A DNA stretch of 64,000 bases. Source: Orbicella franksi (Eukaryota). Below are positions 4,525 to 48,679 of the stretch, one piece after another (the stretch's first letter is position 1; each line of letters starts with the position of its first letter). The notes under the pieces were generated by a model. That model had not been told where the DNA came from and ran no database searches. It saw only the letters and a list, made by a program, of their open reading frames with translations. Location: contig OZ116699.1 of assembly GCA_964199315.1 (NCBI GenBank), positions 37,076,001 to 37,140,000 on the forward strand, in the 5' to 3' direction. The position numbers were made by a program, and so were the translations under genes.

Positions 4525-7500
4525 AAAAGCCCCAAAGTATTAGTAGACAGCAATTTAATGTAGCAGTCTATGGATTTCCAGTGCAGGAAGTAATTGTTAA
4601 ATGGCCAACACTGCAAGCAAATGTGACAAATGAACTCTTTGTTGGTCGAGTTCCTGCTGACGATCCTTTTGATTGTGTATTCAATAGTACTGCACAATAC
4701 AGAAGAACCCCAGAGTTTCAGAATGAAATGCTGTCATGCCATATTGGAACAGATGTCCTTGGAAAGTTGTTTCAAGGGGATGAGCTGTGGGATCATTGCA
4801 GTAACCCTTTTTATACGTGTTCCGTACTATGTGTCAAGGTGGTAGTTAAGAATTCATTTGGTGTAAGTGAGAGTGACCCAGCACGTTGGAATTTGGTACA
4901 CGAGAGTGAGTTTTTAATATTTATTATTTTTTACATAATGTAGGGACAATGTATTCAATCAAAATTGTTCAATCATGTATTTAGAGAATAGTCCAAGGAA
5001 ATTATGCATGCTGATTTGTTAAAAATTGTGCGTGATAAATTGTGCGTGATAGTTGAGGAGGGCACAGCCCTCCTCAACTATCACGCATAGAAATCGAGAG
5101 TGAATAATCTAATTGTTTTAGTATAGTTCTACTAGTCGTTCAAAACTTTATCTAAATACTCTTCACAGACACCTTGAAATTAAATGCCAAGAAGTGGCCA
5201 TCATTTTGTTAACAAGCGCACATTGTGGCGTAGTCAATCAGAGAACAACATTCGTGATAGAACGCTAGTCGATTTATTCTAAGACTTGATGGAAACACAG
5301 ACCTAGCACAAGCTGTTGACATACAATCATGTAATGATGGCATCAGCAAATAAAGAGAATTATGTTGTTTCCTTTTTCCATTGCAGTATTTTCTAAAACA
5401 AGCTACATGTTCTCCGTGCTTCTAGTGAGTTATGTTGTATAGCTCTAACACTCTTTCAAGTTTGGGAGAACTTGAAAAATCTGGGAATGCTAAGAATTGC
5501 AGTATTTTTGTAATCTAAATACTACTAAGGTGGAAAGGACAAGAGGATTATGGAAATCCACTCACCTATTTTGTATTAGTGGCCTATACTGACATGTATC
5601 TCCTTGCAAGGCAATTTCAAGCCAGTGATCGCTCTCTCGGTGGCTGACAGGAGCCCTGTGTATGACTGGAAGTGAACTGGGTTACACTGACGACTCGACT
5701 CAGTCCATAAACCCCCAAAAACTTGGCCATTATCCAGCCATTTTGATCTCACGCTAGGTCAACAACCCATATACATTTATCTAGCCTCATTTGAGTGATG
5801 TATTTGTTNNNNNNNNNNNNNNNNNNNNNNNNNNNNNNNNNNNNNNNNNNNNNNNNNNNNNNNNNNNNNNNNNNNNNNNNNNNNNNNNNNNNNNNNNNNN
5901 NNNNNNNNNNNNNNNNNNNNNNNNNNNNNNNNNNNNNNNNNNNNNNNNNNNNNNNNNNNNNNNNNNNNNNNNGTTACTGTTATTGTCATTATTACTATTA
6001 TTGTTGTTGTTGTTGTTGTTGTTATTATTAAATGATTATGGTGCTATTATTTTGCTGTATCCTATTCGCTTGGCAGTATTGGTTTGAAAGTCTGCACAAG
6101 TGTTGTGACTGCCAGTCAGCTGAGAGGGATGAGGGAGAAAACAAGTAACTTTAACCGGATGGGGAGATGTGGTTCTCTGAACCCTTCACTAACTGATATT
6201 GGCAACACTAACTGGTCCCCAGTCCATTGGAGATATTATCTTTTCCTCCCCACTCTTTTACTATCAGTCTAAATGGCCTGACTCTCCATGACCCTGAGGC
6301 ATGATGGACATCCTTTCTTTTGCTGCCAATTTAAACAGCCTCACTCTCCATGACTCTAAAGCCATGCGCATGTGCGTTTTTCCTATTAGATAATTTGTGG
6401 TATCCAGTCTACGGCCACGCCACATACGTACCAACATTGCTGTTAATAGTATTTACTGGGTCGCATAGCAGTGAGGTGAATTTCCACCACTAAATTCAAC
6501 TCCACTTCTGTCAATAATTGTTAAATATTCTGAATATACGTTTCTTTCATATTGTAGCACTTTGTCCCCCTCTTCGCAATCTGACTGTGTCATTTGGTGA
6601 ACATCATTTTACCGCCAGTTGGCAGTGTCAACAAGTAGAAATGCGTGTGGATTATGATGTTACATATGTCATAACACCAGTGCTGACAGGAGAGGTAGTT
6701 ACCAATTAACTTAATGAGTTTTTTCGTGCTTTTTTCTTGGTTACATGAAAAATTCCCTAAGCCTTCAAGCCAAACAGACTTGCAAGTAGATGCAAGTTGA
6801 AAACTTGGGTGTACTTGCGATTCCGTTTGGCCAGGCCTTGCATGCACTTGCGTTGCCTTGCAATGCCGTGCACGGAAGTCGACACAGATTTTCACCGTTT
6901 GTTTATCCAACCCAAGTCAATTCAAGTTGATTGACGTGTATTCATTGTTATAGTAACCTATTAGCCAATGAAATACAGGATATGTTTGTGTGATGGTCGC
7001 ATTTTGGCCATGCGGGACTGAGCCCGTTGCCTTGAAATCTTTTTTAAGCGATCTGCGTATACTTGAGAGGTAACTTGTGTGTCTGTTTGGTCCCCCAACG
7101 CAAGTCTCTACACAAGTTCAACTTGCAACTACTTGCAAGTCCATTTGGCAGGGCTCTAAGGTTTTGCATGAAAACGCCATTAAAATCCTTTCAAATTGCT
7201 GTTAATTTACCATGAATAAATTCACTGGATTTTCACATGTTTTCAGTTCATAGTGATAGTTATCTGGGAAATTTTACATGCATGTTCTAAAATACAAAAT
7301 GCTAGCATAAGAACAAAGTTTGAGGGCTTACATGAAGTGTCTTATAAGATAAAAGTTCCAAGGACACCTATCATCCCATATAGGCCCTTGGCATTCACCA
7401 CTAGATTGTCCTGTAGCAGTGTGAAAAAAAAACTGAGAAGGGCATGAATCTATTTATTGAAATGTCAAACCACTCTGCATGGGGCATTTTGCTTCCATAA

Positions 7501-48500: not shown

Positions 48501-48679
48501 TTCGGCTTCTTACACAATTTTGTAATTTTCATTCACAGGATCCTTTATACGGCAATCAGGAAGACTCATCCTCTGGCAGAACCCATTCATACGATGAAAT
48601 CCCACCTCAAGAAGCCGGCGAGGATTCCTATGATGCCTTGCATATACACCAAGACAATGGTGATTTAGTAAAATCTTAA
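39502..48679 (+). CDS. Receptor paralog 3: FN3-domain single-pass membrane protein, class I cytokine receptor/gp130-like (5' end not identified)
   Basis: Exons 39502-39840, 41651-41802, 41974-42136, 42259-42341, 42929-43175 (GC donor), 43304-43445 (TM), 47418-47466, 48539-48679. Frame and phases match paralogs 1 and 2. Motifs LSPYTAYTLYIQC..CVGGWGLLSRP, APAKAP..VVWK|LPPPNTWNG. Tail has YGNQ, YDEI and YDAL. Confidence 0.85.
40200..41420. repeat. Intronic minisatellite (~41-45 bp unit)
   Basis: Units such as GCATGCAGAGAGCTATGTAGGTAAAGCCACATCTTAGGCTGGCTGG. Homogeneous at 40900-41350, degenerate toward 40200. Confidence 0.95.
45604..45891. mobile_element. MITE with ~50-bp near-perfect TIRs
   Basis: CCTCGGAGATCCAGGGGCTACTAGCCGGGACGAAGCGATATTTTCGGGCGA and its reverse complement ending at 45888. 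Confidence 0.85.
47783..47966. other. Assembly gap (N run)
   Basis: N run seen directly, flanked by (AAT)n tails. Confidence 1.
47970..48390 (-). mobile_element. L2-type LINE 3' fragment
   Basis: The minus strand reads LLVHKALNNQAPDYIKDFLH...YRLRSQD...DRAFA..GP..W..IP.ELR...FKSKLKTHLF, a typical L2/CR1 RT C-terminus, followed by an (ATT)n tail. Confidence 0.75.

Follow-up and report, generated by a model that had tools for sequence, protein, structure and literature searches.

Analysis of 64,000 nucleotides from the coral Orbicella franksi (assembly GCA_964199315.1, contig OZ116699.1, positions 37,076,001 to 37,140,000 of the forward strand; this whole stretch is referred to as the window) revealed three head-to-tail genes on the + strand, termed P1, P2 and P3, that encode single-pass membrane receptors built from immunoglobulin (Ig) and fibronectin type III (FN3) domains (Table 1). 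The window consists of AT-rich eukaryotic DNA with four assembly gaps. A bacterial-style listing of open reading frames (ORFs) is useless for split genes such as these, and exon models were built from acceptor and donor sites, intron phases and orthologous proteins. All three modelled frames are open and each ends in a stop codon. From the cysteine-rich exon on, P1, P2 and P3 follow the same phase series (1-1, 1-0, 0-1, 1-0, 0-1, 1-2, 2-0 and 0-stop), with the order and every intron phase of the shared exons in common, and the exons are of similar size in the three paralogs (for example 152/152/137, 86/83/71 and 58/49/49 nt). Stop-free segments of the three regions also match each other pairwise. 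The cluster is bounded by the acceptor of the P1 domain exon (4525) and by the P3 stop codon (48679). Introns are GT-AG throughout except for a single GC-AG intron in P3 (43176-43303), in which the apparent GC donor reads CAG/GCATGT and the neighbouring GT donors are either weak or in the wrong phase.

The exon models and shared phases bear out the original prediction, made from the letters of the window, of a tandem cluster of three divergent paralogs of single-pass Ig/FN3 receptors in a coral. All eight peptide motifs that it quoted are present on the + strand where it had placed them, and the model of P2 reproduces its length of 599 amino acids exactly. Its claim of a shared structure stands for exon order, intron phases and motifs, with the correction that an Ig exon is found in the window for P2 only, and P1 turned out to extend further than proposed, running on to 16978 across an inserted retroelement. 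Additional paralogs, for which a look at the flanks had been suggested, were sought by tblastn with P2 over 49-64 kb of the window, and no fourth copy was found there.

Table 1. Genes, exons, assembly gaps and retroelement ORFs in the window (positions count from its first nucleotide; aa, amino acids).
Feature	Position	Strand	Details
P1	before 4525 to 16978	+	8 exons, partial, 440 aa
P1 Cys-rich FN3-like exon	4525-4905	+	phase 1-1, 127 codons, most divergent of the three copies
P1 FN3-A exons	6558-6694, 7923-8091	+	from splice sites and phases
P1 FN3-B exons	8751-8821, 9286-9544	+	from splice sites and phases
P1 membrane-span exon	10303-10408	+	hydrophobic span; acceptor uncertain, 10231 possible
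P1 small exon	16170-16218	+	from splice sites and phases
P1 tail exon	16826-16978	+	stop TAG; orthologous to last exon of Porites upstream gene
P2	22042-31052	+	10 exons, 599 aa, complete
P2 signal-peptide exon	22042-22129	+	upstream ATG at 22003 would give 612 aa
P2 Ig (I-set type) exon	22350-22625	+	phase 1-1; Pfam Ig_3 E 1.7e-9, I-set E 1.1e-8
P2 Cys-rich FN3-like exon	24154-24549	+	phase 1-1, 132 codons, six Cys; 'D2' of the original prediction
P2 FN3-A exons	24797-24948, 25764-25941	+	partial Pfam fn3 in paired exons
P2 FN3-B exons	26468-26553, 27093-27336	+	partial Pfam fn3 in paired exons
P2 membrane-span exon	29399-29528	+	hydrophobic span
P2 cytoplasmic exons	30464-30521, 30861-31052	+	'KPLMDVIGKL', then 'GDYDETI', 'DYVKM', C-terminal 'SEV'
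P3	34313-48679	+	9 exons, 470 aa, complete
P3 signal-peptide exon	34313-34391	+	46% identical to start of annotated Porites ortholog
P3 Cys-rich FN3-like exon	39502-39858	+	phase 1-1, 119 codons
P3 FN3-A exons	41651-41802, 41974-42136	+	from splice sites and phases
P3 FN3-B exons	42259-42341, 42929-43175	+	GC donor after the second
P3 membrane-span exon	43304-43445	+	hydrophobic span
P3 exon	47418-47466	+	tentative
P3 tail exon	48539-48679	+	'LYGNQ' (YxN), 'YDEI'-nine residues-'YDAL'
Assembly gap	5809-5972		in P1 intron 4906-6557; flanking phases 1/1 fit
Assembly gap	47783-47966		in last P3 intron 47467-48538; flanking phases 0/0 fit
Assembly gaps	49011-49157, 51693-51834		downstream of cluster
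LINE-type retroelement ORFs (endonuclease-reverse transcriptase)	11408-14369	-	Pfam Exo_endo_phos E 2.9e-11, Exo_endo_phos_2

The encoded proteins are type I, single-pass membrane proteins composed of a signal peptide, in some members an Ig domain, a cysteine-rich FN3-like domain, two further FN3 domains (FN3-A and FN3-B), a membrane span and a cytoplasmic tail. They have the general make-up of single-pass receptors of the immunoglobulin superfamily (IgSF) with FN3 domains, namely a signal peptide, Ig and FN3 domains (Pfam Ig_3/I-set and two fn3) and one span. Structure and database searches were run with orthologs and window exons as queries rather than with the spliced window proteins, and Pfam detected only Ig and fn3 domains, both in the window exons of the genes and in four full-length orthologs. 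An Ig domain is present in P2 and in the Porites counterpart of P1 and is missing from P3. No Ig signature was found in the window beyond the P2 exon, and hence no Ig exon for P1 or P3; because this signature is the only one, and because the 462-residue Porites counterpart of P3, with fn3 domains only, agrees, P3-type genes seem to lack the Ig domain altogether. In the case of P1, the signal-peptide and Ig exons lie outside the window, so that its 5' end is missing here. The segment upstream of P1 (1-4500) shows a strong GC skew and contains two ORFs, one with a retropepsin-like 'DSGSA' motif (at about 664-766) and one rich in Pro and Glu (3409-3663); this segment probably represents a retrotransposon that may split P1 from its 5' exons. 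P1 is unlikely to be a pseudogene, given its intact frame and orthologous tail exon, with the 5' end being outside the window, and the same possibility was rejected for P3 because its frame is intact, its ortholog is annotated and its first and domain exons are conserved. In a database gene model of 214 amino acids from a related coral, the signal-peptide exon is joined to the Ig exon as in P2 and the Cys-rich exon is then entered out of frame, which is probably a mis-prediction.

The Cys-rich FN3-like domain, encoded by one symmetric exon of 357-396 nt, has no Pfam match. A phmmer search with this exon against 1.84 billion representative proteins returned only 21 hits; 17 short exon-sized fragments and, in addition, one full-length protein of 592 residues from Acropora muricata share the domain. 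Four long bacterial proteins with cadherin/VCBS-like repeats were dismissed as chance matches over a 40-residue stretch only, and no relative outside corals, vertebrates included, was detected by phmmer among the 1.84 billion representatives. The AlphaFold2 model of the domain (predicted local distance difference test score, pLDDT, of 82) shows an insert of 35 residues that is rich in Cys, and strand E is followed by a short helix. A first MAFFT alignment of the two N-terminal FN3-like domains placed exon pieces of FN3-A onto the Cys-rich domain and was discarded; this overlay by itself shows that the two are FN3 relatives. FN3-B carries an invariant C-x4-C hairpin ('MCT..GCG'), and its profile matched Dscam (4.8e-14) and PTPRD (2e-11), as well as PTPRF, ROS1, contactins and neogenin; the 60 best matches included no cytokine receptor. 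Whole-protein phmmer searches against solved structures likewise retrieved Dscam, neogenin, sidekick, contactin and DCC. The membrane-proximal FN3-B is thus clearly of the adhesion type.

The cytoplasmic tail of P2 and of four orthologs ends about 85 residues past the span and contains no enzyme domain. Onward splicing into a kinase or phosphatase domain had been named in the original prediction as an outcome that would speak against it; no such transcript model was found, Pfam detected neither a protein tyrosine phosphatase (PTP) nor a kinase domain in the tail, and the frames of P2, of its orthologs and of P3 close with a stop codon. The automatic naming of the Porites ortholog as a receptor-type PTP (RPTP) is accordingly not matched by a PTP catalytic domain. 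Several short motifs are conserved in these tails. P1, P2, P3 and the orthologs share a juxtamembrane P-[SL]-L-x-x-V-[LI]-x-x-L; all members have Y-D-x-[ILTV] behind an acidic stretch, with T at position +3 in P2; and a YxN site is found in P1, P3 and the Porites P1-type gene. P3 contains YDEI-x9-YDAL, the spacing of which resembles, at the motif level, that of an immunoreceptor tyrosine-based activation motif (ITAM). A C-terminal [ST]-x-[IV], resembling a class I PDZ ligand, is present in P1 (TEI, 16976-16978), P2 (SEV, 31050-31052), the Porites P2 ortholog (TEI) and the Porites P1-type protein (SKI), and is missing from P3 and from the P2 orthologs of Acropora, Montipora and Stylophora.

Word-indexed homolog searches identified only six full-length relatives, all of them from Scleractinia: three Acropora species, Montipora foliosa, Porites lutea and Stylophora pistillata. 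These proteins are uncharacterised or were automatically named 'PTPRF-like' or 'neural cell adhesion molecule'. The suspicion that the host is a coral agrees with every detectable homolog being scleractinian (Acropora, Montipora, Porites and Stylophora), and as far as has been found the family appears to be restricted to stony corals. P2 aligns collinearly from end to end with the proteins of Porites, Acropora, Montipora and Stylophora (42-44% identity). Between coral families, the identity of individual ectodomain domains is 35-56% and is lowest for the Cys-rich domain (35-45%). Gene order was compared with one other species, Porites lutea, in which a P1-like gene precedes and a P3-like gene follows the P2 ortholog, all on one strand, so that the three-gene order is kept. 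The upstream gene encodes an Ig-bearing protein of 595 residues with the last exon 'SVHAYENH...SSNYDRL' (as compared to 'SVHPYDNP...QYYDSI' in P1), and in the downstream gene the start, the domain exon and the first FN3-A exon match P3 at 46%, 33% and 45%, respectively. In a phylogenetic tree the Porites P3-like gene is the nearest row to P3 by path (42% identity), with the fork that would join them unresolved; both are placed outside the P2 clade (support 82/91), and P1 forms a very long branch. Given that Porites lutea has kept the three genes in this arrangement, P1, P2 and P3 are, as judged by comparison of these loci, old paralogs kept in order and not a recent expansion. Of the proposal that the family is expanded and fast-diverging, the recent expansion has therefore to be given up, whereas fast change is supported by the low identity of orthologs from different coral families (only about 43%), a level of protein identity at which estimates of dN/dS, the ratio of nonsynonymous to synonymous substitution rates, are saturated.

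Two of the four assembly gaps fall into introns of the cluster (Table 1). They appear to leave the coding sequence uninterrupted, a hidden exon being formally possible, since the phases match on either side, no exon occupies the corresponding introns of the paralogs and the aligned proteins show no interruption. The ORFs of the long interspersed nuclear element (LINE) are inserted in the 5.8-kb P1 intron that follows the membrane-span exon (10409-16169) and are not part of P1; the membrane-span exon is directly followed by a (TCAG)n microsatellite (10424-10632) with some 53 copies of the unit. The first intron of P3 contains two arrays of 32-bp units (35622-36129 and 37390-37927; 15-17 copies, 96-97% matches) in opposite orientation and about 1.3 kb apart, a layout like that of a foldback-type element. 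Between the Cys-rich exon and FN3-A of P3, a 46/89-bp tandem array (40446-41402; about 10-21 copies, 82-84% matches) is the source of many spurious minus-strand ORFs.

Taken together, we favour, with a probability of roughly 55%, the view that these genes form a coral-restricted family of Ig/FN3 receptors, represented by three old tandem paralogs, that signals through phosphotyrosine. The ectodomain would bind ligand by means of the Ig domain and the N-terminal FN3-like module, and clustering would expose the tail tyrosines to cytoplasmic tyrosine kinases; once phosphorylated, these may recruit SH2 adaptors of the Grb2, Src or Syk type, and the C-terminal motif, where present, may anchor the receptor to a scaffold. 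This scheme draws on general knowledge of SH2 and PDZ ligands and corresponds to the working mode of a non-kinase immunoreceptor or adhesion-signalling receptor, not to that of a Box1 JAK-coupled receptor. Clustered, non-enzymatic single-pass receptors with an acidic stretch followed by YxxL/I-type sites are also found among the ITAM and hemITAM immunoreceptors and the Hydractinia Alr proteins. P1 and P2 differ from these in the spacing of their motifs and in the +3 residue, which are non-canonical, and the coral ectodomains are FN3-based whereas those of Alr consist of V-set Ig arrays.

The original prediction had likened the three genes to gp130 and other class I cytokine receptors. Part of this likeness survives, in that the N-terminal two-domain module (Cys-rich domain plus FN3-A) matches cytokine receptors best, if weakly; the diagnostic motifs and Pfam families are absent and FN3-B is adhesion-type. 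The aligned gp130 motifs offered as specific evidence correspond to the general FN3 consensus (B-strand W, E-F 'L.P.T.Y' and F-G 'N..G..S'). Three defining features of class I receptors were inspected. With respect to the first disulfide (C-x9-10-C-x-W), the strand A Cys is present and the second Cys is replaced by I or L in all members ('SLIW', 'LLLW', 'NIIW'). There is a possible Cys pair between strands C' and E ('DC', 'ECNVT'), the pairing of which cannot be read from the model, and its second Cys is missing in Stylophora; the CNVT after the conserved Cys is reminiscent of the C-D-L-T of class II receptors. WSXWS is absent, its place being occupied by the ordinary FN3 pattern G-x-G-P-x-S ('GEFIGPFS' in P2, 'G.[FY]IGPFS' in the orthologs and 'WGLLSRPVT' in P3). 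For Box1, the juxtamembrane region contains no PxxPxP and only one conserved Pro. Since these three features are lacking, the family is not filed as a cytokine receptor. No cytokine-receptor family of Pfam, among them IL6Ra-bind, EpoR_lig-bind and Lep_receptor_Ig, scored, even at E 10, with any of the 21 members of the two-domain alignment, for which only fn3 was reported.

The strongest competing explanation, which we consider doubtful, is a true, though very divergent, kinship of the family with the helical-cytokine receptors, either of class I (gp130/Domeless) or of class II (tissue-factor type). The Cys-rich domain and FN3-A would then form the cytokine-binding module and FN3-B a leg, the ligands would be coral four-helix cytokines, and signals would pass through JAK or another tail-bound kinase and STAT. 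Several observations favour this explanation over a coral-specific phosphotyrosine receptor, for which it must also be borne in mind that the tyrosine-motif mechanism rests on short motifs only. A profile of the two-domain module, searched against the sequences of solved structures, retrieved IL31RA (1.5e-4), LIFR (2.4e-4) and gp130 (3.8e-3), and all of its top 15 matches (E 1.5e-4 to 0.026) belong to the gp130 family; the alignments cross the domain boundary, from the F-G strands of the N-domain across the linker and as far as strand F in the C-domain, with 'L.P[YF]T.Y....C' in common. Titin (0.07), CRLF1 (0.087) and PTPRF (0.24) follow behind. With an FN3-A-only profile, to which the P1 and P3 window exons had been added, IL31RA, LIFR and D3 of gp130 were the best single-domain matches (22-25 bits), ahead of titin (21.5), tenascin-R and contactin-1 (19.7) and the best single PTPRF domain (19 bits), although multi-domain LAR chains reach higher summed scores and the few-bit edge of the gp130 family is about the worth of one aligned Cys. 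In the Atlas shape search, the N-domain model found a tissue-factor cluster first, at a TM-score of 0.58 and a root-mean-square deviation (rmsd) of 2.3 A, and eight of the 10 rows for the two-domain model were class I clusters (CRLF1, IL-6R, TPOR, IL27RA-like, LIFR-like and gp130-homologue; TM 0.39-0.47). The Atlas feature search placed an IL31R cluster at rank 4, and Foldseek against PDB placed the gp130 cytokine-binding region at rank 3 for the two-domain model (E 1.1e-8), just after sDscam. In the other model FN3-A prefers ordinary FN3 domains, so that the preference of the N-domain is specific to that domain. The general layout also fits the tall class I receptors (gp130/IL6ST, LIFR, IL31RA, G-CSFR and Drosophila Domeless), which share with the coral proteins the type I topology, an N-terminal Ig domain, two FN3-like domains of which the first has extra cysteines, a membrane-proximal FN3 leg, a short enzyme-free tail with tyrosine motifs and the F strand quoted above. 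STAT, SOCS and CRLF3 have also been reported in Cnidaria (PMC6797617, PMC13203501), and JAK by one of these accounts. Against this stand, besides the missing disulfide, WSXWS, Box1 and Pfam scores, the results for the N-domain alone: its profile matched no cytokine receptor among solved structures, and Foldseek retrieved nothing significant for its model from PDB, Swiss-Prot models or AFDB clusters. The identity to tissue factor is 10-17%, and FN3 domains of Ihog, Dscam and DCC lie only some 1-2 Z units lower. All shape tests depend on two AlphaFold2 models from shallow alignments; every TM-score of the two-domain model is below 0.5, its superposition on gp130 gives an rmsd of about 11 A, with Tie2, NCAM2 and EphB2 fitting no worse, and in some shape or profile comparisons sDscam, Tie2 and LAR equal or beat the cytokine receptors. 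Unlike the gp130 family, the coral proteins also lack a conserved YxxQ, have one FN3 leg instead of three, and carry the 35-residue Cys-rich insert and the helix after strand E. Their N-domain is encoded by a single exon, whereas Liongue and Ward described the complex splice structure of the cytokine-receptor homology domain (CHD) as largely conserved across class I, with Domeless and Ciona CLF-3 as single-exon exceptions (PMC1963337). Class II receptors equally lack WSXWS, yet they have neither an Ig domain nor an FN3 leg, and the coral domain gave no Pfam Tissue_fac or Interfer-bind score. Moreover, the label 'domeless' has already been assigned, by automatic annotation, to another coral gene (PMC13739741). 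The positive signals are thus each weak, with generic FN3 domains close behind, yet they point in the same direction and are specific to the N-terminal module. A grouping of the domains with generic FN3 repeats had been named beforehand as a result that would contradict a cytokine-receptor identity; this was observed for one half, the last FN3 domain going firmly with Dscam, LAR-type phosphatases and contactin, while the N-terminal module leans to the cytokine receptors. The likeness that the first two FN3-like domains bear to the cytokine-binding module we regard as real but within the twilight zone; it concerns ancestry rather than membership and is left unsettled by these comparisons, true cytokine-receptor ancestry being in our estimate rather unlikely.

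An improbable explanation in our judgement is that the three genes encode cell-adhesion or self/non-self recognition molecules with a logic like that of Hydractinia Alr, which would engage in homophilic or heterophilic binding and use the tail mainly as a PDZ anchor. It draws on the tandem arrangement of IgSF/FN3 genes with low interspecies identity, on the closeness of the Ig domain and FN3-B to Dscam, sidekick, contactin and neogenin and on the C-terminal PDZ-ligand-like residues. ITAM-like motifs and motifs resembling immunoreceptor tyrosine-based inhibition motifs (ITIMs) also occur in tails of the Alr family, according to a preprint on these proteins (10.1101/2022.03.04.482883). Orthologs that pair one to one and a gene order kept across coral families, however, are at variance with a recognition locus of fast turnover, only three members were found, and the conserved tyrosine motifs point to signalling. 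As for the adhesion receptors themselves (Dscam, sidekick, contactin, neogenin/DCC and LAR-type RPTPs), the I-set Ig and the membrane-proximal FN3 clearly belong with them, but the coral proteins have far fewer domains, no phosphatase or other catalytic domain and different tail motifs, and their Cys-rich FN3-like domain has no sequence-detectable counterpart in these receptors. A phosphotyrosine-signalling Ig/FN3 receptor family specific to corals remains our preferred reading.

According to the accepted view, dedicated helical-cytokine receptors start in bilaterians, with CRLF3, present in Cnidaria (PMC6797617), as the sole cnidarian exception (PMC6797617, PMC1963337, PMC13203501), and a survey of 2026 reported JAK and STAT in sponges and cnidarians and the first IL6R-like receptor in molluscs (PMC13203501). 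STAT and SOCS, and JAK according to one account, go back further than these receptors. With its ligand-binding half leaning to the cytokine-binding module, the coral family is a candidate for the missing early cytokine receptor. In this form, which we think unlikely, it would be the cnidarian counterpart of the helical-cytokine receptors, retaining a pre-bilaterian two-domain module that either predates or has lost WSXWS and Box1 and that is paired with coral four-helix proteins. Our literature search found no paper describing the family, which to this extent is an undescribed one; it was found only in stony corals and has a new disulfide-rich variant of the FN3 domain, conserved synteny and conserved tyrosine motifs, and databases currently mislabel its members as phosphatases or NCAM. 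As such, the family is a candidate for signalling in the immunity, symbiosis or cell contacts of corals.

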